Source: Scyliorhinus canicula (lineage: Eukaryota). Taken from it: a DNA stretch of 64,000 bases. Position numbers and translations under genes: made by a program. The stretch is from the NCBI RefSeq assembly GCF_902713615.1, contig NC_052164.1, positions 16,653,360-16,717,359 of the forward strand, read 5' to 3'. How positions within the stretch are numbered: position 1 is the first letter of the stretch; each line of letters begins with the position of its first letter. Below are positions 935 to 25,076 of this stretch, in pieces. Under the pieces are notes generated by a model. That model was not told the origin of the DNA and did no database searches. It worked only from the letters and a program-made list of their open reading frames with translations.

Positions 935-3514
935 TGCTGGCCCCGCCACCACCCATGTGTTAAGCACCTTGGACATTGCCCTCGCAAACCCTTGCCAGAA
1001 TTCTCTAAGCTCCGGGCATGCCCAAAACATATGGACATGGTTTGCAGGGCTGCCCTTGCACCTCATACAACTGTCTTCTACCCCAAAATACTTGCTCATT
1101 CTTGCTGCCGTCATATGTGCCCGATGGACCACCTCAAATTGAATTAGACTGAGCCTGGCACATGATGAGGAGGAATTAACCCTGCCCAGGACTTCTGCCC
1201 ACACATCTGCTTCCAACTCCTCGCCTAGCTCCTCCTCCCACTTGCCCTTGAGCTCGTCCACCGGGGTTTCCTCCGCCTCCTGTAGTTCCTGGTAGATATC
1301 CAACACCCTCCCCTCCCCCACCCAGGTGCCAGAGACCACCCTGTCCTGTATCTTCAGTGGCGGCAGCGTCAGAAAGGCCACAACCTTTTTTCAGGAAGGT
1401 TTGTACTTGCAGATATTTAAAGGCATTTCCTGGCGGCAGATTACATTTGCCCTCTAGCGCCTTCAAACTGGGAAAGCTTCCATCTATGAACAGATCTCCC
1501 ATCCTTCTGATGCCTTCGCTCTGCCAGCTCTGGAACCCACCATCCATCCAACCCGGGACAAACCTGTGATTGTTGCATATCTGGGTCCAGACCGACGCTC
1601 CCTCCACCCTCTTGTACCTCCTCCACGGTCCCCAGATCCGCAGTGTCGCCACCACCGCCGGACTTGTGGAGAAACAGGTCAGCAATAACGGCAAAGGAAT
1701 CATTATCAAAGCTCCCAGACTAGTACCTTTACATGACGTCACCTCCAGCCTCCCCCCCCCCCCCCCCCCCCCCCCCATTGCCCACTTCCTAATCATAGCT
1801 ATATTGGCCGCCCAGTAGTAGTTGCGAAAGTTCGGCAGCGCCAACCCCCCCCCCCCCCCCCCCCCCCCCCGGACTGCGCTCCTCCAGCGATCTCCTGACT
1901 CACGGGGTCTTATTCGCCCACACAAAGCTCGTAATGATCCAACTCACCCGCTTAAAAAAGGCCTTAGGGATGATGATGGGGAGGCACTGAAAGACAAACA
2001 AAAATCTGGGGAGGACAGTAATTTTCACGGTCTGCACCCTCCCTGCCAGTGACAGCGGGAGAATGTCCCACCTTTTAAAGTCCCCTTCCATTTGCTCCAC
2101 CAACCGGGTCAGGTTGAGCCTGTGCAGGGCATTGGGCATCCCATTTCCTGGCCACCTGTATACCCAGGTAACGAAAACTTTTCTCTACCATCCTGAGCGG
2201 CAGCTCTTTCAGTCTCTCCTGCTGCCCCTTGGCCTGGATCGCAAACAACTCGCTCTTTCCCATGTTCAGTTTGTACCCTGAAAAACTACCAAAATCCTTC
2301 AGGATCCGCAGAACCTCCCCCATCCCGTCCACAGGATCCAAAATGTACAGGAGCAAATCATCCGCGTACAGCGAGACCCGATGCTCCACCCCCCGCACCC
2401 CCCGAACCACTCCCCGCCAGTTCCGAGAGGCTCTCAGCGCCATAGCTAGTGGTTCTATAGCTAGGGCAAATAGTAACGGGGAGAGGGGACACCCCTGCCT
2501 CGTTCCCCGGTGAAGCTCGAATTACCCCGACCTCAGCCGGTTTGTACATACACTTGCTACAGGCGCCTGGTACAGCAATTTCACCCAGCCGATAAAGCCC
2601 TCACCAAACCCGAACCTCCCCAGCGTTTCCCAGAGGTACTCCCACTCCACCCGATCAAAGGCTTTCTCTGCGTCCATCGCTGTTACCACCTCCACCTCCC
2701 CTCCCTCTGAGGGCATCATAATAATATTTAAAAGTCTCCGGACATTGGTATTGAGTTGTCTGCCTTTAACAAACCCAGTCTGGTCTTCCTCTATCACCCC
2801 TGGGACGCAATCCTCAATTCTTGTGGCCAGAATCTTAGCTAGCAATTTGTCATCCACGTTTAAAAGCGAAATCGGCCTGTATGACCCGCAATGTTCCGGG
2901 TCCTTCCCCCGTTTAAGAATGAATGAGATTAAAGCCTGTGACATTGTTGGGGAGAGGGTCCCTTTCTCTCTAGCCTCATTGAAGGTCCTCATCAGGAGTG
3001 GGCTCGATAGTTCTGAAAATTTCTCATAGAATTCTACCTGATAACCGTCCGGCCCCAGGGCTTTACCCGATTGCATGCCCTCTATACCCTTGACAATCTC
3101 CTCCAATTCAATTGTGGCCCCCAGCCCCTCCACCAGCTCCTCTTCCACCTTTGGAAACTTCAACTGGTCCAAAAATTGCCTCATCCCTTCTACTCCCGTC
3201 GGGGGCTCCGACTCGTATAGTTTACCATAGAACTACTTAAAGACTCTGTTCACTCACCCTGGATCCAAGACCGTGTTACCCTCCTTATTCTTTACTCCCC
3301 GATATCTCTGGCCACCTCCCTCTTTCGCAGTTGGTGTGCCAGCATTCTACTCGCTTTCTCCCCATACTCATAGACTGGCTCCTTTGCCTTCCTCAGCTGT
3401 GCAACCGCTTTCCCTGTGGTCAGCAGTTCAAACTCCGCCTGCAGACTCCACCGATCCATCAGTAGCCCCACCTCGGGGGCCTCCGCGTATCTCCTGTCCA
3501 CTCGGAGTATCTCC
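935..3514 (-). mobile_element. L1-clade LINE ORF2 fragment (RT domain and C-terminal CCHC), 5'- and 3'-truncated, frameshifted
   Basis: Minus-strand ORFs give [37 protein letters not shown] and CMRC...HMFWAC; the 5' end abuts the hsp30 spacer sequence at ~3514. Confidence 0.9.
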
Positions 3515-14165: not shown

Positions 14166-14825
14166 TTAATTGTCCATTTTTTCATCCGCCTCATTTCTCT
14201 TCTCATCTTTCCCACTCTCCTGTCTCTGTGCCTCTTGGTCAGGATTTAGCCGAGGAGTGGTTGTTGTGTCAGAGGTGATGTTGACGGGCACAATTCGTTC
14301 ATTCCCGGCTGGCAGTGCCAGGCGTGGGGCTTGAACCTTTAACTGACCGTCCTGTGACAAACAGCAGTTCAGAGCTTCAGCATTGACATCGTCTGGCAAC
14401 TGAAATTCTCTCCTGAACTCTTCGTATTTGTAGCTGTAAGAGCCACTGCCATCATCCCTTTTCTTCTCGTGTTTTCCTGTCACCAGCAATTTGCTTCCAA
14501 GTACTTTCACCTTCAGTTCTTCTGGGGAGAATCGCTGCACATCCAGGGACAGAGAAAATCCATCTCCATCCTTGTCCCCTGATTGTCTTTTACCTTCTTC
14601 GGTATCATCAGGTCTGTTGTCCTGATTTCCTGGTTTCTCCACCAGATATTCTTTTGCCAGCTCCTCAAGAACTCTATCCATAAAGTTCATGCTCTTTCTT
14701 GCTTCTTCCACCTGATTCCACATGTTGCATTCCAGCGACTGACAGACCCTGTGTGGAACAGGCCACAATGTGTACACAGGCTGCTGGCACAGACGTGAAG
14801 GGGGGAAAGCCCGACAGCTCAGCAT
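14166..14825 (-). CDS. hsp30: HSP30/HSPB9-like, copy 4 (219 aa, intact)
   Basis: ATG at 14825; complete domain; TATA 14918-14925. Confidence 0.9.
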   Translation of the reverse strand: MLSCRAFPPSRLCQQPVYTLWPVPHRVCQSLECNMWNQVEEARKSMNFMDRVLEELAKEYLVEKPGNQDNRPDDTEEGKRQSGDKDGDGFSLSLDVQRFSPEELKVKVLGSKLLVTGKHEKKRDDGSGSYSYKYEEFRREFQLPDDVNAEALNCCLSQDGQLKVQAPRLALPAGNERIVPVNITSDTTTTPRLNPDQEAQRQESGKDEKRNEADEKMDN

Positions 14826-15525
14826 TGTCTCTGCCTCTTCTCTCACTTCTCTCAAAGCCACTGATGTGAACTGAAAGTCTTCAGTCTCTGATCTGCTGCT
14901 GCACTCAGAACCCACGCCTTATATATTCTACGGTCAGAAATGCAGACCCTTCCAGAATGAACTCAACTTTGCTGGGTTCATGACCCGTGAGTTGACAATA
15001 AATGACGTCTCGTCTCATCCTTGATTTAAAGGAGAATGACTCGACTCAGTGACACCCACTGGAGCCATTCCAGAGATTTCCGGAATGTTCTCAGCCAAGG
15101 ACAGCAATGATGGGAGGAGCAATGTTAATGAGGGACAGCCTAGCAGCAGGCAGTGTGTGCAGCAATGTCAGATTCCTTTTAAGAAGTAAGAGTTGTTTAT
15201 CGACAGAAATGAGCTTCTGTGACCCTGACATTAGGGCACAATGCTGAAAGTTAATTATTTCCACTTGTATTTTGGTACTGTGCTGTTGTCAGCGTTAATG
15301 TGGAGTATTTCTATGTGTATGTATATTGGAATAATAAATACTTTTGAATGAAATTATGATGATTTGGATTTTTCACTTCATAGAAAGAAATTGATATTAA
15401 ACAACTGGAACTAAATAATGACTTATTTTCCACTCAGTAAAAAAAAACTTTTCAATTGAATTAACTGAAAACCCAGACAAATAATTCAATCAGCCAAGAT
15501 CTGCCTCAAAGAGAATTTAGCTCAT
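14271..15525. repeat. 1.25-kb direct repeat (second copy 19418-20671) flanking the first young L1
   Basis: Offset of 5147 nt; only a handful of differences by eye. Confidence 0.95.
14918..15091 (-). promoter_or_regulatory. Copy 4 promoter: TATA box and HSE 15067-15091
   Basis: Same nGAAn array as copy 2. Confidence 0.8.
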
Positions 15526-18500
15526 GTTGCAGGAGACACATCTGAAAGTGTCGGACCAGACCAGGCTAAGGAAGGGCTGGATTAGCCAGATCTTCCACTC
15601 GGACTCGAAGTCCAGAGGGGTGGCAATCATGATCAACAAGCGCGTGCAATTTGAGGCAGAGGGCATATCCGCAGACAGGGGGGGCAGATACCTGATGGTA
15701 CGGGGCAGACTGGAGGGGAGAAGAGTGGTGCTGGTGAATATATATGCCCCGAACTGGGATGACGTGGACTTCATTAAAAGAGTGCTGGGGAAGATCCCGG
15801 ACCTGGATTCTCGCAGGCTAATAATGGGAGCGGACTTTAACATGGTCCTTGAGCCGACTTTGGATCGGTTGTGTCCCAGAACGGGTAGACTCTCAGGAAG
15901 TGCAAGGGAGCTCAAAGGGTTTATGGAGCAAATGGGGGCAGTGGACCCCTGGAGAGATAGACAGCCAACAGGAAGGGGCTACTCGTTTTACTCGCACGTC
16001 CATAAAGTATATTCCAGGATAGATTTCTTTGTACTAAGCAGGAACTGTATGGGGGAGGTAAAGAACACGGAATACTCAGCAATTACCATTTCAGACCATG
16101 CCCCGCATTGGGTGGACCTGCAGTTCGGGAAGCGAGCTATCAACGCCCGCAATGGAGGCTAGATGTGGGACTGCTGTCGGAGGAGGGGATCTGCGAGAGG
16201 CTTCGCAAATGTATAAAAAATTACCTGCAGGTGAATGACACTGGGGAGGTCTCAGCGGCGACCGTGTGGGAGGCGCTAAAGGCAGTAGTGCGGGGGGAGC
16301 TGATTTCAATTGGAGCCCATAGAGCCAAGGCAGACCGGGCAGAGATGGATAGATTGGTCAGGGAAATGGGCCGGATAGATGAAGAGCACGCGGAGTCCCC
16401 GGGGGAGGTTTTACTCAGGGAAAGGCAGAGGCTACAGGCGGAACTGGGGGCACTATCCACGAGCAGGGCCGTGGAACAGCTTAGGAAGGCGAGGGGAGTG
16501 GTGTACGAGTATGGGGAAAAGGCTAGCAGACTGTTAGCGCAGCAACTTAGGAGGAGGGAGGCGGCCAGGGAAATAGGTAGAGTGAGGGACGAGGGGGGGC
16601 ACAAAGTGGAGGATCCGGCAGAATTGAATAGGGTATTCCGGGACTTCTATCGTAAGCTGTATACTTCGGAGCCGCCAGAAGAACCGGAGGGGATGAAAAG
16701 GTTTCTGGATGGGTTAACTTTCCCAACAGTTGGGGGGGGGGGGGGCGAGTGGAAGAGCTGGGGGCCCCGATTAGAGTAGAGGAGGTATTGGGGGGCCTAA
16801 AGGCCATGCAGTCGGGGAAGTCCCCGGGACCGGATGGATACCCAGTAGAGTTTTATAGGAAGTTCTCTGAGCTGGTGGGCCCGGTCTTGGCGAGGGTTTT
16901 CAATGAGGCAAGGGACAGAGGGACCCTGCCGCCGACGATGTCACAAGCCACCATATCTCTGATATTAAAGCGGGGTAAAGACCCGGAGGTGTGCGGGTCC
17001 TACAGGCCAATCTCCCTGATTAATGTAGATGCCAAGCTCCTGGCAAACGTACTGGCGGGTAGAATGGAGGACTGTGTACCGGAGGTGATTGGGGAGGATC
17101 AAACGGGGTTCGTGAAAGGTAGGCAGCTGGCGGCCAATCTGAGGAGATTGCTCAATGTGATAATGATGCCCCCGGCGGGTAGAGAGGTGGAGGTAGTGGT
17201 GGCTATGGACGCCGAGAAGGCCTTTGACCGGGTGGAGTGGGAATATCTATGGGAGGTGCTCGGACGGTTTGGGTTCGGGGAGGGATTGGTGGATTGGATC
17301 AAATTATTATATCAGGCCCCGAGGGCCAGCGTCAGGACCAACAGAGAAGTGTCGGAGTACTTTAGGTTGTACCGAGGGACCAGGCAGGGCTGCCCGCTCT
17401 CCCCGCTGCTGTTTGCGCTGGCCATAGAGCCGCTGGCGATTGCGCTGAGAGCCGCAGAGGGTTGGAAGGGGATGGTGAGGGGCGGGGTTGAACATAGGGT
17501 TTCTCTTTATGCAGACGACCTGCTCCTGTACGTGTCGGACCCAGTGGCCGGGATGGGAACTATACTGGGAATGCTGAGGGAGTTCGGCCAGTTCTCAGGA
17601 TACAAATTAAATACGGTCAAGAGTGAAATGTTTGTGGTACAGGCAAGGGGCCAGGAGAACAGATTGAGAGGGCTACCGTTTAGGTTAGTTGAGGAAAATT
17701 TCCGGTATTTGGGAATCCAGGTGGCGCGAGACTGGGGCAGGCTGCACAAGTTAAATTTGGCCAGGGTGGTGGAGCAAATGAAGGGAGAGTTTCGGAGATG
17801 GGATGCACTCCCGCTGTCGCTGGCAGGGAGTGTGCAGACTGTAAAGATGACAATCCTCCCTCGATTTTTGTTTATTTTTCAGTGCCTCCCGATCTTTATC
17901 CCACAGTCCTTCTTCAAAAGAGTTAACGGGCTGATCATGAGCTTTGTCTGGGCGGGAAAGTCTCCGCGGGTGAAGAAGGCGATGTTGGAGAGGAACCGCA
18001 GCGAGGGAGGGCTGGCGTTGCCGAGTCTGGTCAATTATTACTGGGCGGCCAACATCGCTATGATAAGGAAGTGGATGGTGGGTACAGGGTCTATTTGGGA
18101 GCGAGTGGAGGCGGCTTCGTGCAGGGGCTCCAGTTTGGAAGCCCTGGTCACGGCTCCTCTACCGCTGCCGCCGGCCAAGTACACCACCAGCCCGGTAGTG
18201 GTGGCGACCCTGCGGATATGGGGCCAGTGGAGGAGGGATGTGGGGGAGATGGGGGCGTCTGTCTGGGCGCCAATCTGCGACAACCATCGGTTTGCCCCCG
18301 GCAGTATGGATGGGGGGTTCCGAGTATGGCGGCGAGCAGGGGCGGGAAGGGTGGGTGATATGTTCCTGGAAGGGAGCTTCGCGAGTTTGAGGAGCTTGGA
18401 GGAGAAATTTGGGTTGGTAGGGGGAAATGATTTTAGATACCTACAGCTGCGGGACTTTGTTCGTAGACAGGTCCCATCTTTCCCGCGCCTCCCGCCAATG

Positions 18501-19418
18501 GGGATCCTAGACAGAATAGGCTCTGGGAGGTACGAAGGGGAGGGTAGAGTCTCAGGTATTTATAAGGTGCTCATGAGGGAGGAAGGGTCCCAGACAGAGG
18601 AACTGAAACTTAAATGGGAGGAGGAGCTAGGCGGGGAAATGGAGGATGGGCTGTGGGCAGAGGCCCTGAGTAGGGTAAACTCGACCGCGACATGTGCAAG
18701 GCTCGGGCTGATCCAATTTAAGGTCGTTCACCGGGCCCATATGACGGTGGCTCGGATGAGCAAATTTTTTGTGATAGAGGACAAATGCGCTAGGTGCGCG
18801 GGAGGACCAGCGAACCATGTGCACATGTTTTGGGCATGCCCTGAGCTGAGGGGGTACTGGGAGGGATTTGCGGGGGTCATGTCCCAGGTGCTAAAAACAA
18901 GGGTGGTGATGAGTCCAGGGGTGGCAATTTTTGGGGTTTCGGAAGACCCAGGCGTCCAGGGGGAGAAAGCGGCCGATGTGCTGGCCTTTGCTTCCCTGAT
19001 AGCCCGGCGACGAATATTATTGGCGTGGAGGGACTCAAAGCCCCCGAAGACTGAGTGGTGGCTTGCGGACATGTCAAGTTTCCTGGGGATGGAAAAAATT
19101 AAGTTCGCCTTGAGGGGATCTGTGCAGGGGTTCACCCGGAGGTGGCAACCATTTATTGACTTCTTTGCGGGAGAGTGAGCGTCAGCAGGGGGGTGGGGGG
19201 AGGGGGGGGGGGGGGGGTAGAGTAGAGTAGGAGGGAAAATATGGCGGGTAGTACGGGTGGGAGGGGAGCGGGCTTGTGCAATACGGTATGATGGAAGTAT
19301 TGAAAGTACGTGGATGTTTGCACATTTTTGCCTTTTTTGCTTCCTTTCTGATGATGTCTGTAACTGTTTATAAAGCCAAAAACTACCTCAATAAAATTGT
19401 TTATTAAAAAAAAAAAAA
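15524..19418 (+). mobile_element. Young 5'-truncated L1-clade LINE (ORF2 from MLQETH: EN, RT, CCHC; G-rich 3'UTR; poly-A); two frameshifts
   Basis: ORFs 15524..16162, 16108..16779 and 16749..19178 with [25 protein letters not shown] and CARC...HMFWAC; AATAAA then A13 at 19406-19418. Confidence 0.95.
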
Positions 19419-19972
19419 GAGGTGATGTTGACGGGCACAGTTCGTTCATTCCCGGCTGGCAGTGCCAGGCGTGGGGCTTGAACCTTTAACTGACCGTCCT
19501 GTGACAAACAGCAGTTCAGAGCTTCAGCATTGACATCGTCTGGCAACTGAAATTCTCTCCTGAACTCTTCGTATTTGTAGCTGTAAGAGCCACTGCCATC
19601 ATCCCTTTTCTTCTCGTGTTTTCCTGTCACCAGCAATTTGCTTCCAAGTACTTTCACCTTCAGTTCTTCTGGGGAGAATCGCTGCACATCCAGGGACAGA
19701 GAAAATCCATCTCCATCCTTGTCCCCTGATTGTCTTTTACCTTCTTCGGTATCATCAGGTCTGTTGTCCTGATTTCCTGGTTTCTCCACCAGATATTCTT
19801 TTGCCAGCTCCTCAAGAACTCTATCCATAAAGTTCATGCTCTTTCTTGCTTCTTCCACCTGATTCCACATGTTGCATTCCAGCGACTGACAGACCCTGTG
19901 TGGAACAGGCCACAATGTGTACACAGGCTGCTGGCACAGACGTGAAGGGGGGAAAGCCCGACAGCTCAGCAT
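19388..19972 (-). pseudogene. hsp30: HSP30/HSPB9-like, copy 5: near-identical to copy 4 but the 3' end is replaced by antisense L1 tail (ends VPVNITSFFFFNKQFY*)
   Basis: ATG at 19972; homology stops at 19418 at the L1 poly-A; promoter intact (HSE 20214-20238), so it may still be expressed. Confidence 0.75.
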
Positions 19973-20669
19973 TGTCTCTGCCTCTTCTCTCACTTCTCTC
20001 AAAGCCACTGATGTGAACTGAAAGTCTTCAGTCTCTGATCTGCTGCTGCACTCAGAACCCACGCCTTATATATTCTACGGTCAGAAATGCAGACCCTTCC
20101 AGAATGAACTCAACTTTGCTGGGTTCATGACCCGTGAGTTGACAATAAATGACGTCTCGTCTCATCCTTGATTTAAAGGAGAATGACTCGACTCAGTGAC
20201 ACCCACTGGAGCCATTCCAGAGATTTCCGGAATGTTCTCAGCCAAGGACAGCAATGATGGGAGGAGCGAAGTTAATGAGGGACAGCTAGCAGCAGGCAGT
20301 GTGTGCAGCAATGTCAGATTCCTTTTAAGAAGTAAGAGTTGTTTATCGACAGAAATGAGCTTCTGTGACCCTGACATTAGGGCACAATGCTGAAAGTTAA
20401 TTATTTCCACTTGTATTTTGGTACTGTGCTGTTGTCAGCGTTAATGTGGAGTATTTCTATGTGTATGTATATTGGAATAATAAATACTTTTGAATGAAAT
20501 TATGATGATTTGGATTTTTTACTTCATAGAAAGAAATTGATATTAAACAACTGGAACTAAATAATGACTTATTTTCCACTCAGTAAAAAAAAACTTTTCA
20601 ATTGAATTAACTGAAAACCCAGACAAATAATTCAATCAGCCAAGATCTGCCTCAAAGAGAATTTAGCTC

Positions 20670-23600
20670 ATGTTGCAGGAGACACATCTGAAAGTGCCGG
20701 ACCAGACCAGGCTAAGGAAGGGCTGGATTAGCCAGATCTTCCACTCGGACTTGGACTCGAAGTCCAGAGGGGTGGCAATCATGATCAACAAGCGCGTGCA
20801 ATTTGAGGCAGAGGGCATATCCGCAGACAGGGGGGGCAGATACCTGATGGTACGGGGAAGACTGGAGGGGAGAAGAGTGGTGCTGGTGAATATATATGCC
20901 CCAAACTGGGATGACGTGGACTTCATTAAAAGAGTGCTGGGGAAGATCCCGGACCTGGATTCTCGCAGGCTAATAATGGGAGCGGGTTTTAACATGGTCC
21001 TTGAGCCGACTTTGGATCGGTTGTGTCCCAGAACGGGTAGACTCTCAGCAATGGCAAGGGAGCTCAAAGGGTTTATGGAGCAAATGGGGGCAGTGGACCC
21101 CTGGAGAGATAGACAGCCAACAGGAAGGGGCTACTCGTTTTACTCGCACGTCCATAAAGTATATTCCAGGATAGATTTCTTTGTACTAAGCAGGGACTGT
21201 ATGGGGGAGGTAAAGAACACGGAATACTCAGCAATTACCATTTCAGACCATGCCCCGCATTGGGTGGACCTGCAGTTCGGGGAAGCGAGCTATCAACGCC
21301 CGCAATGGAGGCTAGATGTGGGACTGCTGTCGGAGGAGGGGGTCTGCGAGAGGCTGCGGAAATGCATAAAAAATTACCTGCAGGTGAATGACACGGGGAA
21401 GGTCTCAGCGGCGACCTTGTGGGAGGCGCTAAAGGCAGTAGTGCGGGGGAGCTGATTTCAATTGGGGCCCACAGAGCCAAGGCAGACCGGGCAGAGATGG
21501 ATAGATTGGTCAGGGAAATGGGTCAGATAGATGAAGAGCACGCGGAGTCCCCGGGGGAGGTTTTACTCAGGGAGAGGCAGAGACTACAGGCGGAACTGGG
21601 GGCACTATCCACGAGCAGGGCCGTGGAACAGCTTAGGAAGGCGAGAGGAGTGGTGTACGAGCATGGGGAAAAGGCTAGCAGACTGTTAGCGCAGTAACTC
21701 AGGAGGAGGGAGGCGGCCAGGGAAATAGGTAGAGTGAGGGACGAGGGGGGGCGCAAAGTGGAGGACCCGGCAGAATTGAATAGGGTATTCCGGGACTTCT
21801 ATCGTAAGCTGTACACTTCGGAGCCGCCGGAAGAACCGTAGGGGATGAAAAGGTTTCTGGACGGGTTAACATTCCCAAAAGTTGGTGGGGGGCGAGTGGA
21901 AGAGCTGGGGGCCCCGATTAGAGTAGAGGAGGTATTGGGGGGCCTTAAGGCTATGCAGTCGTGGAAGTCCCCGGGGCCGGATGGATACCCAGTAGAGTTT
22001 TATAGGAAGTTCTCTGAGCTGGTGGGCCCAGTCTTGGCGAAGGTTTTCAATGAGGCAAGGGACAGAGGGACCCTGCCGCCGACAATGTCACAAGCCACCA
22101 TATCTCTGATATTGAAGCGGGGTAAAGACCCGGAGGTGTGCGGGTCCTACAGGCCAATCTCCCTGATTAATGTAGATGCCAAGCTCCTGGCAAAGGTACT
22201 GGCGGGTAGAATGGAGGACTGTGTACCGGAGGTGATTGGGGAGGATCAAACGGGGTTCGTGAAAGGTAGGCAGCTGGTGGCCAATCTGAGGAGATTACTC
22301 AATGTGATAATGATGCCCCCGGCGGGTAGAGAGGTGGGGGTAGTGGTGGCAATGGACGCCGAGAAGGCCTTTGACCGGGTGGAGTGGGACTATCTATGGG
22401 AGGTGCTCGGACGATTTGGGTTCAGGGAGGGATTGGTGGATTGGATCAAATTATTGTATCAGGCCCCGAGGGCCAGCGTCAGGACTAACAGAGAAGTGTC
22501 GGAGTATTTTGGTTGTACCGAGGGACCAGACAGGGCTGCCCGCTCTCCCCGCTGCTGTTTGCGCTGGCCATAGAGCCGCTGGCGATTGCGCTGAGAGCCG
22601 CAGAGGGTTGGAAGGGGATGGTGAGGGGCGGGGTTGAACACAGGGTTTCTCTTTATGCAGACGACCTGCTCCTGTACGTGTCGGGCCCAGTGGCCGGGAT
22701 GGGAACTATACTGGGAATGCTGAGGAAGTTCGGCCAGTTCTCAGGATACAAATTAAATACGGTCAAGAGTGAAATGTTTGTGGTCCAGGCAAGGGGCCAG
22801 GAGAACAGATTGAGAGGGCTACCGTTTAGGCTGGTTGAGGAAAATTTCCGGTATTTGGGAATCCAGGTGGCACGAGACTGGGGCAGGCTGCATAAGTTAA
22901 ATTTGGCCAGGATGGTGGAGCAAATGAAGGGAGAGTTTCGGAGATGGGATGCACTCCCGCTGTCGCTGGCAGGGAGGGTGCAGACGGTAAAGATGACAAT
23001 CCTCCCTCGATTTTTGTTTATTTTTCAGTGCCACCCGATCTTTATCCCACAGTCCTTCTTCAAAAGAGTTAACGGGCTGATCATGAGCTTTGTCTGGGCG
23101 GGAAAATCCCCGCGGGTGAAGACGGCGATGTTGGAGAGGAACCGCAGCGAGGGTGGGCTGGCTTTGCCGAGTCTGATCAATTATTACTGGGCGGCCAACA
23201 TCGCTATGATAAGGAAGTGGATGGTGGGTACGGGGTGTATTTGGGAGCGGGTGGAGGCGGCTTCATGCAGGGGCTCCAGCTTGGAAGCCCTGGTCACGGC
23301 TCCTCTACCGCTGCCGCTGGCCAAGTACACCACCAGCCCGGTAGTGGTGGCGACCCTGCGGATATGGGGCCAGTGGAGGAGGCATGTGGGGGAGATGGGG
23401 GTGTTTGTCTGGGCGCCAATCTGCGACAACCATCGGTTTGCCCCCGGCAGTATGGATGGGGGGTTCCGAGTATGGCGGCGAGCAGGGGCGGGAAGGGTGG
23501 GTGATATGTTCCTGGAAGGGAGCTTCGCGAGTTTGAGGAGCTTGGAGGAGAAATTTGGGTTGGTAAGGGGAAATGATTTTAGATACCTACAGTTGCGGGA

Positions 23601-24570
23601 CTTTGTTCGTAGACAGGCCCCATCTTTCCCACTCCTCCCGCCAATGGGGATCCTCGACAGAATAGTCTCTAGGAGGGAAGAAGGGGAGGGCAGAGTCTCG
23701 GGTATATATAAGGTGCTTATGAGGGAGGAAGGGTCCCAAACAGAGGAACTGAAACTTAAATGGGAGGAGGAGCTAGGTGGGGAAATGGAGGATGGGCTGT
23801 GGGCAGAGGCCCTGAGTAGGGTAAATTCGACTGCGACATGTGCTAGGCTCGGGCTGATCCAATTTAAGGTCGTTCACCGGGCCCATATGACGGTGGCTCG
23901 GATGAGCAAATTTTTCGGGATAGAGGACAAATGCGCTAGGTGCGCGGGAGGACCAGCGAACCATGTTCACAGGTTTTGGGCATGCCCTGAGCTGAGGGGG
24001 TACTGGGAGGGATTTGCAGGGGTCATGTCCCAGGTGCTAAAAACAAGGGTGGTGATGAGTCCAGGGGTGGCAATTTTTGGGGTTTCGGAAGACCCGGGCG
24101 TCCAGGGGGAGAAAGAGGCCGATGTTTTGGCCTTTGCTTCCCTGATAGCCCGGCGACGAATATTATTGGCGTGGAGGGACTCAAAGCCCCCGAAGACTGA
24201 GTGGTGGCTTGCGGACATGTCGAGTTTCCTGGGGATGGAAAAAATTAAGTTCGCCTTGAGGGGATCTGTGCAGGGGTTCACCCGGAGGTGGCAACCATTT
24301 ATTGACTTCCTTGCGGGAGAGTGAGCATCAGCAGGGGGGTGGGGGGGAGAGGAGGGGGGGGGGGGGGGGGGGGGGGGTAGAGTAGAGTAGGAGGAAAAAT
24401 ATGTCGGGTAGTACCGGTGGGAGGGGAGCGGGCTTGTGCAATATGTTACGATTGAAGTATTGAAAGTACGTGGATGTTTGCGCATTTTTGCCTTTTTTGC
24501 TTTTTCTGATGATGTCTGTAACTGTTATGAAGCCGAAAACTACCTCAATAAAATTGTTTACTAAATAAAA
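20670..24570 (+). mobile_element. Second young 5'-truncated L1-clade LINE with 18-bp target-site duplication; stops and frameshifts in ORF2
   Basis: TSD aaagagaatttagctcat at 20654-20671 and 24569-24586; empty sites at ~5017, ~10158 and ~29737; stops at ~21695 and ~21839. Confidence 0.95.
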
Positions 24571-25076
24571 AGAGAATTTAGCTCATTAAAAGATATATCA
24601 AACTATTGTACAGAGCCAGTGCCCCAACACCTCTGTATTACTCTGCAGCCTCACAATGAGCAGCAGCAACAGCTTGTCATCCAACATAGACACAAGATAG
24701 GACACCACTCAATTACTGAATGGTAGAAACATCTTTCATTGGGGTTATCTGTTCGACATAAATATCTGGGAAGTTAACCAACAGCTTTGCAACCAACTTT
24801 TATTTTGCATTATTTATTTATTTAACTTTAAAAAAAATTCAGAGTGCCCAATATTATTTTTCCCAATTAAGGGGCAATTTAATGTGGCCAATCCACCTAA
24901 CCTGCACATCTTTGGGCTGTGGGGATGTGACCCTCATAGACATGGGGAGAATGTGCATACTCCACATGGATTGTGACCTAGAGCCGGGATCGAACGCGGG
25001 TCCTCAGCGCCGTGAGGCAGCAGCAAACAACTTTTATAATATTTCAGTTCAAAAATATTATTGATCCTGTACCCTT

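Follow-up and report, generated by a model that had tools for sequence, protein, structure and literature searches.

The window, a 64,000-nucleotide stretch of Scyliorhinus canicula DNA, contains an hsp30 cluster in which a 5,147-bp unit (14271-19417) is followed by a second tandem copy (19418-24568); in a self-BLAST comparison, 14271-19414 and 19418-24571 are 96.9% identical over 5,165 columns. The cluster is rich in duplications. Each copy of the unit comprises a flank (F1 or F2) and an L1 element (L1#1 or L1#2). F1 runs from the 3' boundary of the duplication within hsp30, through the hsp30 promoter and a spacer, to the L1 border; its last bases are a copy of the TSD of L1#2 (15508-15525), as those of F2 are the 5' TSD of L1#2 itself (20654-20671). 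The features are collected in Table 1.

Table 1. Genes, flanks and L1 segments of the duplicated hsp30 region (positions within the window)
Feature	Position	Strand	Description
hsp30 copy 4 (HSPB11/HSP30C-like)	14166-14825	-	Intact 219-aa CDS, unbroken across the target point 14270/14271
Flank copy 1 (F1)	14271-15525		99.7% identical to 19418-20671
L1#1 head	15526-16137	+	L1#2-like; shares its 5' truncation point, in the ORF2 endonuclease domain, with L1#2
Switch interval	16138-16188	+	51-bp block without mismatch; resident type changes to young type
L1#1 body and tail	16189-19417	+	Young L1: RT domain, ORF2 end, 3' UTR with AATAAA, 13-A tail
hsp30 copy 5	19388-19972	-	Promoter and codons 1-185 retained, full alpha-crystallin domain; Pfam HSP20 E=1.5e-19
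Flank copy 2 (F2)	19418-20671		First base is the equivalent of 14271 and adjoins the L1#1 poly-A
L1#2	20672-24568	+	5'-truncated L1 with flanking 18-bp TSDs; paralogous units provide its empty sites
L1#2 3' TSD	24569-24586		AAAGAGAATTTAGCTCAT

Both gene copies are identified as hsp30 by PF00011 (E about 1e-19 in each; for copy 4, Pfam HSP20 E=2.5e-19), by 62 shark and ray homologues named 'heat shock protein 30C-like' or 'beta-11-like', and by nearest named proteins that are catshark 'heat shock protein beta-11-like / 30C-like'. Copy 4 has catshark homologues and an exact protein at NCBI for the same chromosome. Copy 5 retains the N-terminus and the V-P-V motif and is without the last 34 codons, in place of which it has 9 codons (FFFFNKQFY) and a stop derived from the antisense tail of L1#1; that tail also contains AATAAA, at about 19393-19398 on the minus strand. 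The exact product of copy 5 was absent from the protein collection searched. A preliminary description of this DNA had reported one complete gene and one truncated gene, which is what the full CDS of copy 4 and the 185 codons kept by copy 5 amount to.

The two elements are L1s by their Pfam domains (RVT_1 in the L1#1 body, Exo_endo_phos in L1#2), by a best solved-structure match of the L1#1 body to human L1 ORF2p (E=3e-99, as compared to 1e-23 for R2), and by the hallmarks of an APE-type endonuclease and RT in ORF2, a 3' AATAAA, a poly-A and variable 5' truncation; genome-wide L1 matches exceeded 11,000 at first look, many of them near-identical. The best genomic relatives of L1#2 are just 97% identical to it. 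The TSD AAAGAGAATTTAGCTCAT brackets L1#2 at 20654-20671 and 24569-24586, and three paralogous units without an L1 contain this 18-mer once apiece (5016, 10158 and 29737) and serve as its empty sites; the normal 18-bp TSD first claimed for this element is confirmed. RNA-editing-type hypermutation of L1#2 was considered and rejected, its 99 private changes being dominated by no one class.

L1#1 has the same left flank as L1#2, a copy of the same TSD and the same first L1 base, and the shared 5' breakpoint of the preliminary description stands; the first bases are 15526 and 20672, rather than 15524 and 20670 as originally placed, because the 'AT' of the ATG taken as the start belongs to the TSD. 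At the other end the 13-A tail (19406-19418, its last A in common with the target) passes directly into hsp30 at the base equivalent to 14271 (A/GAG), and a poly-A inside hsp30 had been correctly recognized. No short TSD is found at L1#1, which is bracketed instead by a repeat of 1.25-1.9 kb. The tail length is typical of young copies, and among 29 young copies the bases after the tail are GA in 19 and GAG in 4. The target, TGTGTC/AGAGG, is a poor fit to the classic T-rich L1 nick site; judged by the bases flanking these relatives, 14270/14271 is of the A/GA(G) type favoured by the young family of L1#1, and the poly-A junction resembles a normal priming site.

Divergence along the unit rises about tenfold at the passage from flank to L1, from 0.32% to 3.2%. 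The flank 14271-15524 differs from its counterpart, which begins at 19418 and ends at 20670, by 4 substitutions and 1 indel in 1,253 nt, and the L1s differ by 124 substitutions and 8 indel events in 3,866 nt (3.21%), more than the roughly 2-3% that had been estimated (Fisher p=4.3e-11). The contrast persists when CpG sites are removed (p=1.7e-9), which rules out CpG hypermutability as its source, and in transversions alone (p=1.2e-4). Over 807 ORF2 codons the two L1s are separated by 47 synonymous and 30 non-synonymous changes (dN/dS 0.19, binomial p=3e-12); the synonymous excess noted earlier is thus real, and a dN/dS so far from 1 indicates that the lineages were active when these differences arose.

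Which lineage gave rise to L1#1 can be read from its body. From 16189 to the poly-A this body matches at least 18 young copies elsewhere in the genome at 99.5% identity, differing from the 18 by 0.47-0.62% and from L1#2 by 3.67%, and it is nested in the youngest clade of its family. The 3' partition tree rejects a clade of L1#1 and L1#2 (AU p=2e-7), and the two are accordingly not mutual nearest neighbours over these 3.2 kb. The origin of the elements in separate active L1 lineages, proposed in the preliminary description, agrees with all of this. A plain tandem duplication followed by neutral decay is excluded by the divergence step, by the position of the L1#1 body among young copies and by the dN/dS value.

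The 5' part of L1#1 has a different affinity. Its head is 1.47% from L1#2 (9 of 613 nt) and 3.8% from the young family, and the 5' partition tree joins L1#1 and L1#2 as sisters (support 100/99). Diagnostic sites were taken from per-site counts across natural copies: 19 of the 21 states that L1#1 and L1#2 share against the majority of the 18 youngest copies fall within 15553-16137, and for most of the 19 the alternative state is found in every one of the 29 other copies. The last shared-type site is 16137 and the first young-type site 16189; the block between them compares with a median mismatch-free block of 22 bp. A young-type body joined to a resident-type head makes L1#1 a mosaic that switches within 16138-16188. 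The description of L1#1 as bracketed by a near-identical 1.25-kb direct repeat therefore holds for the flanks and falls short on extent, since L1#2-type sequence continues for ~0.61 kb into L1#1.

Whether the head was copied from L1#2 itself is a finer question. Among the scored copies, a 61-mer is exclusive to L1#1 and L1#2, a 71-nt piece of L1#2 has 2 mismatches in L1#1 and at least 4 in every other, and 2-3 rare states common to the L1#1 head and L1#2 occur in no other. In total score against the head, L1#2 nevertheless ties for best with one other genomic copy among those scored, and score comparisons place most variants common to both heads across the whole L1 lineage; because of these two observations, descent of the head from L1#2, to which the sequence points, is likely but not proven. 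The divergence of the heads exceeds that of the flanks (p=0.013); relative to the non-coding flank alone the excess is not significant (p=0.14). Over the duplicated 1.87 kb the pairwise divergence is 0.70%, or 0.35% per lineage, and the private branch of the L1#1 body (13 changes in 3,229 nt) measures 0.40% in one lineage; by these substitution counts, the duplication and the young L1 agree in age.

Taken together, it is very probable that L1#2 inserted earlier and in the ordinary way, at 1.25 kb from hsp30, that L1#1 is a mosaic, that 15526-16137 and the 1,255 bp of flank to its left duplicate the head of L1#2 and the flank beside it, and that 16189-19417, whose poly-A is joined to hsp30 at 14270/14271, derives from a young, still-amplifying L1 lineage. 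On this reading of the letters, the young L1 sequence newly inserted amounts to about 3.25 kb, and the duplicated stretch is the flank plus the old L1 head, about 1.9 kb.

How the arrangement came about is a matter for more speculation. Our tentative preference, held with some reserve, is for a one-step origin in which a nascent L1 cDNA was captured by the resident L1#2. Reverse transcription of a young L1 RNA would have been primed on the bottom strand within hsp30, and cDNA extension would have halted, or the cDNA been trimmed, about 3.25 kb from the 3' end. The free 3' end of the cDNA might then have paired with its downstream homologue L1#2 in the 51-bp perfect block, and repair synthesis would have proceeded in an SDSA-like manner through what was left of the L1#2 head and through the flank as far as the break, with an outcome equivalent to a ~1.9-kb target-site duplication. 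The product would be an intact, rebuilt hsp30 (copy 4) and a copy 5 minus 34 codons, with the mosaic L1 between them. The poor fit of the target to the T-rich nick site and the higher divergence of the L1 heads than of the flanks weigh against this history. A cDNA switch onto the resident L1 had already been suggested in the preliminary description, and L1#1 does turn L1#2-type near its 5' end; the copied stretch is ~1.9 kb, not the 1.25 kb then supposed. Precedents exist for the separate elements of such an event: L1 cDNA recombination uses 25-150 bp of homology and is inhibited by mismatches (PMC13526784), small tandem duplications arise where induced L1s insert (PMC11702581), and an SDSA-like model has been used to explain chimeric L1s with duplication of neighbouring DNA (bioRxiv 10.1101/2024.08.27.596794, which cites Gilbert et al. 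2005).

Alternatively, two steps might have been taken, with the unequal crossover between alleles that the preliminary description names as its alternative; we regard this possibility as real, if rather unlikely. A young L1 with its own short TSD would have inserted into hsp30 at 14270/14271 on a chromosome bearing L1#2, and in a heterozygote an unequal crossover at 16138-16188 between L1#2 on the insertion-free chromosome and the young L1 on its homologue would have given the order flank, L1#2 head joined to young L1 body and poly-A, flank, L1#2. Two L1s in the same orientation with just 1.25 kb between them are the classic kind of pair to undergo unequal crossover, and the exchange point does lie inside homologous, same-orientation L1 sequence. 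Every base-level feature is reproduced by this route, namely the mosaic, a switch in shared homology, the poly-A at hsp30 and the loss of the young L1's left TSD; one step and two would leave the same end sequence, which fits either. Standing allelic variation could account for part of what distinguishes the two flank copies and the two L1 heads, and an NCBI protein model with T178 and a full tail (P0085) could be another allele. Against this, two rare events are required while the insertion was still polymorphic, an identity block of 51 bp, set in a stretch with 3.9% divergence, is short by the standards of meiotic homologous exchange, and no intermediate or reciprocal haplotype is known. Moreover, the 0.35% per lineage of the duplicated region is not above the 0.40% of the young body branch, so that extra allelic divergence is not visible.

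A reversed order of events appears improbable. Here a microhomology-mediated replication error would have doubled a 5.1-kb unit of flank and L1#2-type element, and the 3' 3.2 kb of the upstream L1 would later have been overwritten by a young L1, either through reverse transcription primed on the upstream element's own A-tail (L1 primes well on such tails) or through ectopic gene conversion. The abundance of duplications in the cluster suits such a history, as does a 4-bp AGAG microhomology between 14271-14274 and the start of the TSD, but copies in the family of L1#1 usually show A(n)GA(G) behind the tail, and a target preference that accounts for the match weakens it as a sign of replication slippage. 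For the breakpoint to land only a few bases from the L1 3' end would in addition take a coincidence of roughly 1 in 500, the overwriting would need to extend as far as the final diagnostic sites, 19404 and 19409 (2 and 7 nt past the tail-start reading), and the similar per-lineage values (0.35% vs 0.40%) would require both events to be near-simultaneous.

Slimmer still is the chance of a single step in which the mosaic was pre-formed in the cDNA, by an RNA-to-RNA template switch or from a recombinant source, and the flank alone was copied from the chromosome after the non-homologous end of the cDNA had been trimmed exactly at the 5' border of L1#2, with a DNA-level switch within 15526-15551. 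Such a history would account for heads that differ by 1.47% where the flanks differ by 0.32%, for the other genomic copy that matches the L1#1 head as closely as L1#2 does, and for head variants that are mostly lineage-wide. It calls for one more rare switch, however, and for the coincidence of a foreign head that belongs to the resident element's own lineage and carries the 61-mer and the 2-3 rare states seen in no other scored copy. Among the best 40 of 3,853 candidates, no other genomic copy has the same mosaic over 15700-16700, the best having ~19 mismatches, and a recombinant L1 subfamily that might have supplied it was sought among the same 40 and not found.

It is equally hard to believe that an assembler threaded L1#2 of one haplotype into a heterozygous young L1 in hsp30 of the other, making a tandem duplication carried by no chromosome, given that the structure of about 10 kb, with its 3.9-kb repeat, is well inside long-read length, that F1 (14293 and 15374) and F2 (20268, 20270 and a 1-bp deletion after 20285) each have private derived changes, and that hsp30 of the copy-4/5 type is exact in an independent sample (X1 contig 19718-19859, 7 diagnostic sites), whereas the points that could speak for an artefact are uninformative: junction-specific 31-mers in no indexed run, from a 60-nt query with 4 sampled words, and short public Logan contigs whose flank members are mostly of paralogue type, none shown bridging 19417/19418, contig sets being apt to drop minor paths so that absence of the junction there means little.

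If nascent cDNA was indeed captured by L1#2, one L1 integration would have duplicated hsp30, and it is tempting to imagine that it also made of copy 5 a working paralogue, heat-inducible and translated, with its end, stop and poly(A) signal supplied by the L1; we doubt strongly that it did both. L1-linked chimeras, local duplications and deletions have been documented mainly in cultured human cells and tumours. Inherited examples with still-readable parental parts are, to our knowledge, uncommon, and we know of none described outside mammals. The catshark locus is a clean inherited case of a known L1-linked rearrangement, and not a new mechanism or principle. Its value lies in the fact that both parents of the mosaic can be identified, that the switch is narrowed to 51 bp and that part of a gene in a stress-gene cluster has been duplicated, so that the locus shows concretely how L1 activity can add gene copies. 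It does so in a genome where L1 still amplifies, and it offers a natural test of a one-step against a two-step origin.

The chimeras obtained in cell culture by Gilbert and colleagues and by Symer and colleagues are said mostly to involve deletion of the DNA between the nick and an upstream L1. In the catshark, by contrast, the resident L1 is on the opposite side of the nick, and the 1.25 kb that separates the two has been duplicated; the event is, moreover, a germline one and involves a gene. In other respects the likeness to chimeric L1s is close (Gilbert et al. 2002, 2005 and Symer et al. 2002, as cited in bioRxiv 10.1101/2024.08.27.596794 and PMC1920257): the 3' end and poly-A lie at the primed site, the 5' end probably runs into an older resident L1, and the conventional short TSD is absent, with a resolution that would be homology-based.

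A second resemblance is to the templated insertions and small tandem duplications of tumours and of cells overexpressing L1, in which DNA adjacent to the site is duplicated at L1 integration and for which one proposal is that the cDNA switches onto neighbouring DNA in an SDSA-like way (bioRxiv 10.1101/2024.08.27.596794; PMC11702581). The reported templates are usually <250 bp, lie within 15 bp of the site and are somatic, as compared to the ~1.9 kb copied here, with a homologous L1 as the probable pairing partner. Reporters of L1 cDNA recombination likewise depend on tens of bp of uninterrupted homology (PMC13526784), as would a catshark switch that lies in a 51-bp block where the median is 22; what they record is cDNA-to-break and cDNA-to-cDNA joining and translocations, and not a local duplication with a resident element. 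Finally, the locus resembles the unequal recombination between nearby L1s of Burwinkel and Kilimann (1998, cited in PMC1920257), with a hybrid L1 at the junction of a tandem duplication and an exchange inside shared L1 sequence. In the catshark, that route would need a prior, independent L1 at the exact poly-A junction and a heterozygous stage.

When the window was compared with itself, a single tandem pair emerged, in which 14271-19414 aligns with 19418-24571 at 96.9% identity, and this, together with the alignment and the junctions, bears out the preliminary description of a tandem repeat carrying two L1 elements. The 18-mer flanking L1#2, the older resident element, occurs once in each of three L1-free paralogous units (5016, 10158 and 29737) with flanks uninterrupted on both sides, and these units thus represent in-window empty sites for L1#2. 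The tail of L1#2 reads AAATAAAAA, and the 13-A tail of L1#1, the upstream element, directly borders the hsp30 base that corresponds to 14271. Both elements start inside the ORF2 endonuclease domain and carry frameshifts, and their ORF2 is of L1 type (human ORF2p E=3e-99 vs R2 E=1e-23). The 3' end onto which a young L1 was reverse-transcribed lies inside hsp30; on its 5' side, L1#1 runs on without a break, through L1 sequence of shared homology, into a duplicate of the L1#2 head and flank.

Features of the tandem L1 structure in window positions, with divergence of L1#1 from its two relatives
Feature	Position	Strand	Character	L1#1 vs L1#2	L1#1 vs young copies
hsp30 copy 4	14166-14825	-			
Flank copy F1	14271-15525				
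L1#1	15526-19417	+	left flank, TSD copy and first base as in L1#2		
L1#1 head	15525-16137			1.47%	3.8%
L1#1 body	16189-19409			3.67%	0.47-0.62%
hsp30 copy 5	19388-19972	-			
Flank copy F2	19418-20671				
L1#2	20672-24568	+	18-bp TSD AAAGAGAATTTAGCTCAT both sides; textbook insertion		

The hsp30-side flank copies differ by 4 substitutions and 1 indel over 1,253 nt (0.32%, base-by-base alignment), as compared to 124 substitutions and 8 indels over 3,866 nt (3.21%) for the L1 parts, and this step (Fisher p=4e-11, window statistics) persists when CpG sites are left out (p=1.7e-9) and when only transversions are counted (p=1.2e-4). The long ORF2 frame, compared across 807 codons, shows 47 synonymous and 30 non-synonymous changes between the two L1s (dN/dS 0.19), as against a synonymous share of ~24% expected under neutral decay (binomial p=3e-12), so most of the differences predate the insertion and arose with both lineages under selection. 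In the 4.22-Gb genome L1#1 had at least 19 copies at ~98.5-98.7% over its full length, among 11,818 first-look candidates; the best match to L1#2 was no higher than 97%, and its match set was largely distinct. In a tree with 29 genomic copies of the L1#1 family, L1#2 takes the outgroup position and L1#1 falls inside the youngest clade (SH-aLRT 97) on an oddly long terminal branch (0.0095). The proposal of separate active lineages, first made from a few codons, therefore stands together with the divergence step, and decayed tandem duplicates are rejected on dN/dS, the distinct relatives and the nesting of L1#1 in the youngest clade.

The k-mer depth of the L1#1 family, taken from contig depths, was ~15,000-50,000 in two samples of organism A, ~1,000-3,000 in organism C and ~20-60 in organism B, which suggests a recent lineage-specific expansion. 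L1 copies vary in G-run length in ORF2: five Gs (16732-16736) are mostly missing from the 18 youngest copies and present in the 11 older copies and L1#1, and beyond ORF2 L1#2 carries a further G-rich insert of 14 bp. Many contigs of one sample link ~16752 to ~19195, omitting ~2.44 kb between two G-rich runs (16732-16736 and 19194); this skip could point to a subfamily with an internal deletion or be an artefact of the contigs.

L1#1 is a mosaic. With variable columns classed against the 29 copies by per-site counts only, 19 of the 21 columns in which L1#1 agrees with L1#2 against the majority of the 18 youngest copies fall in 15553-16137, and at most of these 19 the other state is present in 29/29 other copies; from 16189 to 19409, L1#1 has the young-family state at ~100 positions differing in L1#2. 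The head tree makes the two elements sisters (bootstrap 100, SH-aLRT 99), and forcing them together in the body tree costs 64.7 log-likelihood units (AU p=2e-7). A resident-type 5' end of L1#1 had been predicted and was found, and the preliminary interpretation is supported overall. The change from one parental type to the other maps to 16138-16188, 51 bp in which the two types show no mismatch (median block 22 bp), and consequently, while the duplication itself holds, the duplicated segment is ~1.9 kb (14271 to ~16160) and not the 1.25 kb originally given; the new material amounts to ~3.25 kb of young L1 plus tail.

Judged from sequence comparison, the head was probably copied from L1#2. A 61-mer (15836-15896) is exclusive to L1#1 and L1#2, and over a 71-nt piece of L1#2 the match to L1#1 has 2 mismatches and those to all other scored copies at least 4. 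Of the 40 copies scored among 3,853 candidates, none has the same mosaic over 15700-16700 (best ~19 mismatches), head-type copies being compared via alignment scores. The best matches reach 98% for the head only and 99.5% for the body, so the head looks older, as expected for a resident copy. Alternatively, the mosaic might already have existed in the cDNA, only the flank being copied from the chromosome: over the first 601 nt of the head L1#2 only ties with one other copy as best match, most head variants are common to a whole L1 lineage, and the heads differ more than the flanks (9/613 vs 4/1,253 nt, p=0.013; p=0.14 against non-coding flank alone). Given the exclusive 61-mer, the 71-nt piece and the lack of a scored copy with the same mosaic, we regard this as the less likely account of the head, and as a variant of the one-step origin discussed next it seems quite improbable.

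How the 5' continuity arose is a matter of inference. In a one-step origin, to which we would give nearly an even chance, the cDNA end would have annealed to the resident L1, after which repair synthesis would have copied back to the break, an SDSA-like course equal to a TSD of ~1.9 kb. Recombination of L1 cDNA is favoured by 25-150 bp of homology and inhibited by mismatches (PMC13526784), induced L1 insertions can leave small tandem duplications at their sites (PMC11702581), and an SDSA-like explanation has been given for chimeric L1s with duplicated nearby DNA (bioRxiv 10.1101/2024.08.27.596794). Alternatively, an ordinary insertion might have been followed by unequal crossover in a heterozygote, with L1#2 on one chromosome exchanging with the young L1 on its homologue; when worked through, these two steps reproduce the observed element order exactly, and we consider them a less likely but serious route. 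A tandem duplication in which 3.2 kb, as far as the tail, was later overwritten is improbable, since it needs a chance breakpoint at the L1 end and two near-simultaneous events. An assembly cross-over between haplotypes is marginally more improbable still: F1 has its own derived changes (14293 and 15374), as does F2 (15121, 15123 and 15139 in F1 coordinates), and these are therefore two sequences with separate histories, not one assembled twice. Sister-chromatid exchange is excluded, as it would leave three L1s.

The body of L1#1 has 13 private substitutions over 3,229 nt (0.40% on one branch) and the duplicated 1.87 kb has 13 between its copies (0.35% per branch), dates that are coherent. The 17 substitutions private to L1#1 (15897-18950) comprise 6 transitions and 11 transversions, 11 of them from sense-strand G, with clusters at 15897/15900/15901 and 18770/18772, and this spectrum differs from the transition-rich differences of L1#2; its cause could be error-prone synthesis in the course of the event, or errors in the consensus.

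The poly-A target, TGTGTC/AGAGGTG, has AGAG in common with the start of the L1#2 TSD. A first impression that this marked a microhomology-mediated duplication was weakened, A(n)GAG being the usual target of the young family: among the 29 copies (L002-L030) the tail is followed by GA in 19/29, mostly as GAA or GAG, and by GAG in 4/29. These counts suggest that the family prefers targets of the form A(n)GA(R) and not a plain T-rich/A site. Young-copy tails span 9-18 A, among which the 13 A of L1#1 are typical.

The available read data were Logan contigs, which are short over 15000-20140; there the flank contigs show paralogue states, as expected if contig building discards minor paths. In an independent sample, one contig is an exact match to 19718-19859 and carries the 7 sites there that only copies 4 and 5 have, so this hsp30 type exists outside the assembly. 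Among the short contigs shown, of a kind that drops minor paths, none spans 19417/19418, and a junction-only query with four sampled words gave no real match; the reads neither confirm nor refute the tandem structure.

The product of the gene concerned is a small heat-shock protein of 219 aa that contains an HSP20 domain; among named proteins, those closest to it are "heat shock protein beta-11-like / 30C-like" of catsharks and other sharks. At least 8 hsp30 copies, 90-95% identical to one another, cluster in the window, and their palindromic unit layout is that of the sister catshark S. torazame (135.7-Mb contig, gene map), in which head-to-head pairs lie ~0.94 kb apart with ~6.9 kb between pairs. 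Copy 4 is intact and an identical protein is on record at NCBI. Copy 5 retains its promoter and, with codons 1-185, the alpha-crystallin domain in full, and its predicted product ends in nine codons, FFFFNKQFY, and a TGA stop from the antisense L1#1 3' end (19388-19418, - strand), which also supplies an AATAAA; the protein collection has no exact match to this product. An NCBI catshark protein, "heat shock protein beta-11-like isoform X2" (P0085), equals residues 1-185 of copy 5 (with T178) joined to the C-terminal tail of copy 4 (14166-14270, - strand). The genome yielded no third locus able to encode it and the 5,147-bp tandem unit no obvious GT-AG intron for it, and P0085 represents either a model whose splicing spans the unit or a trace of another allele.

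Events of this kind are already known from human cells and tumours; the present shark locus adds a well-resolved germline case, in which most of a stress gene was duplicated.
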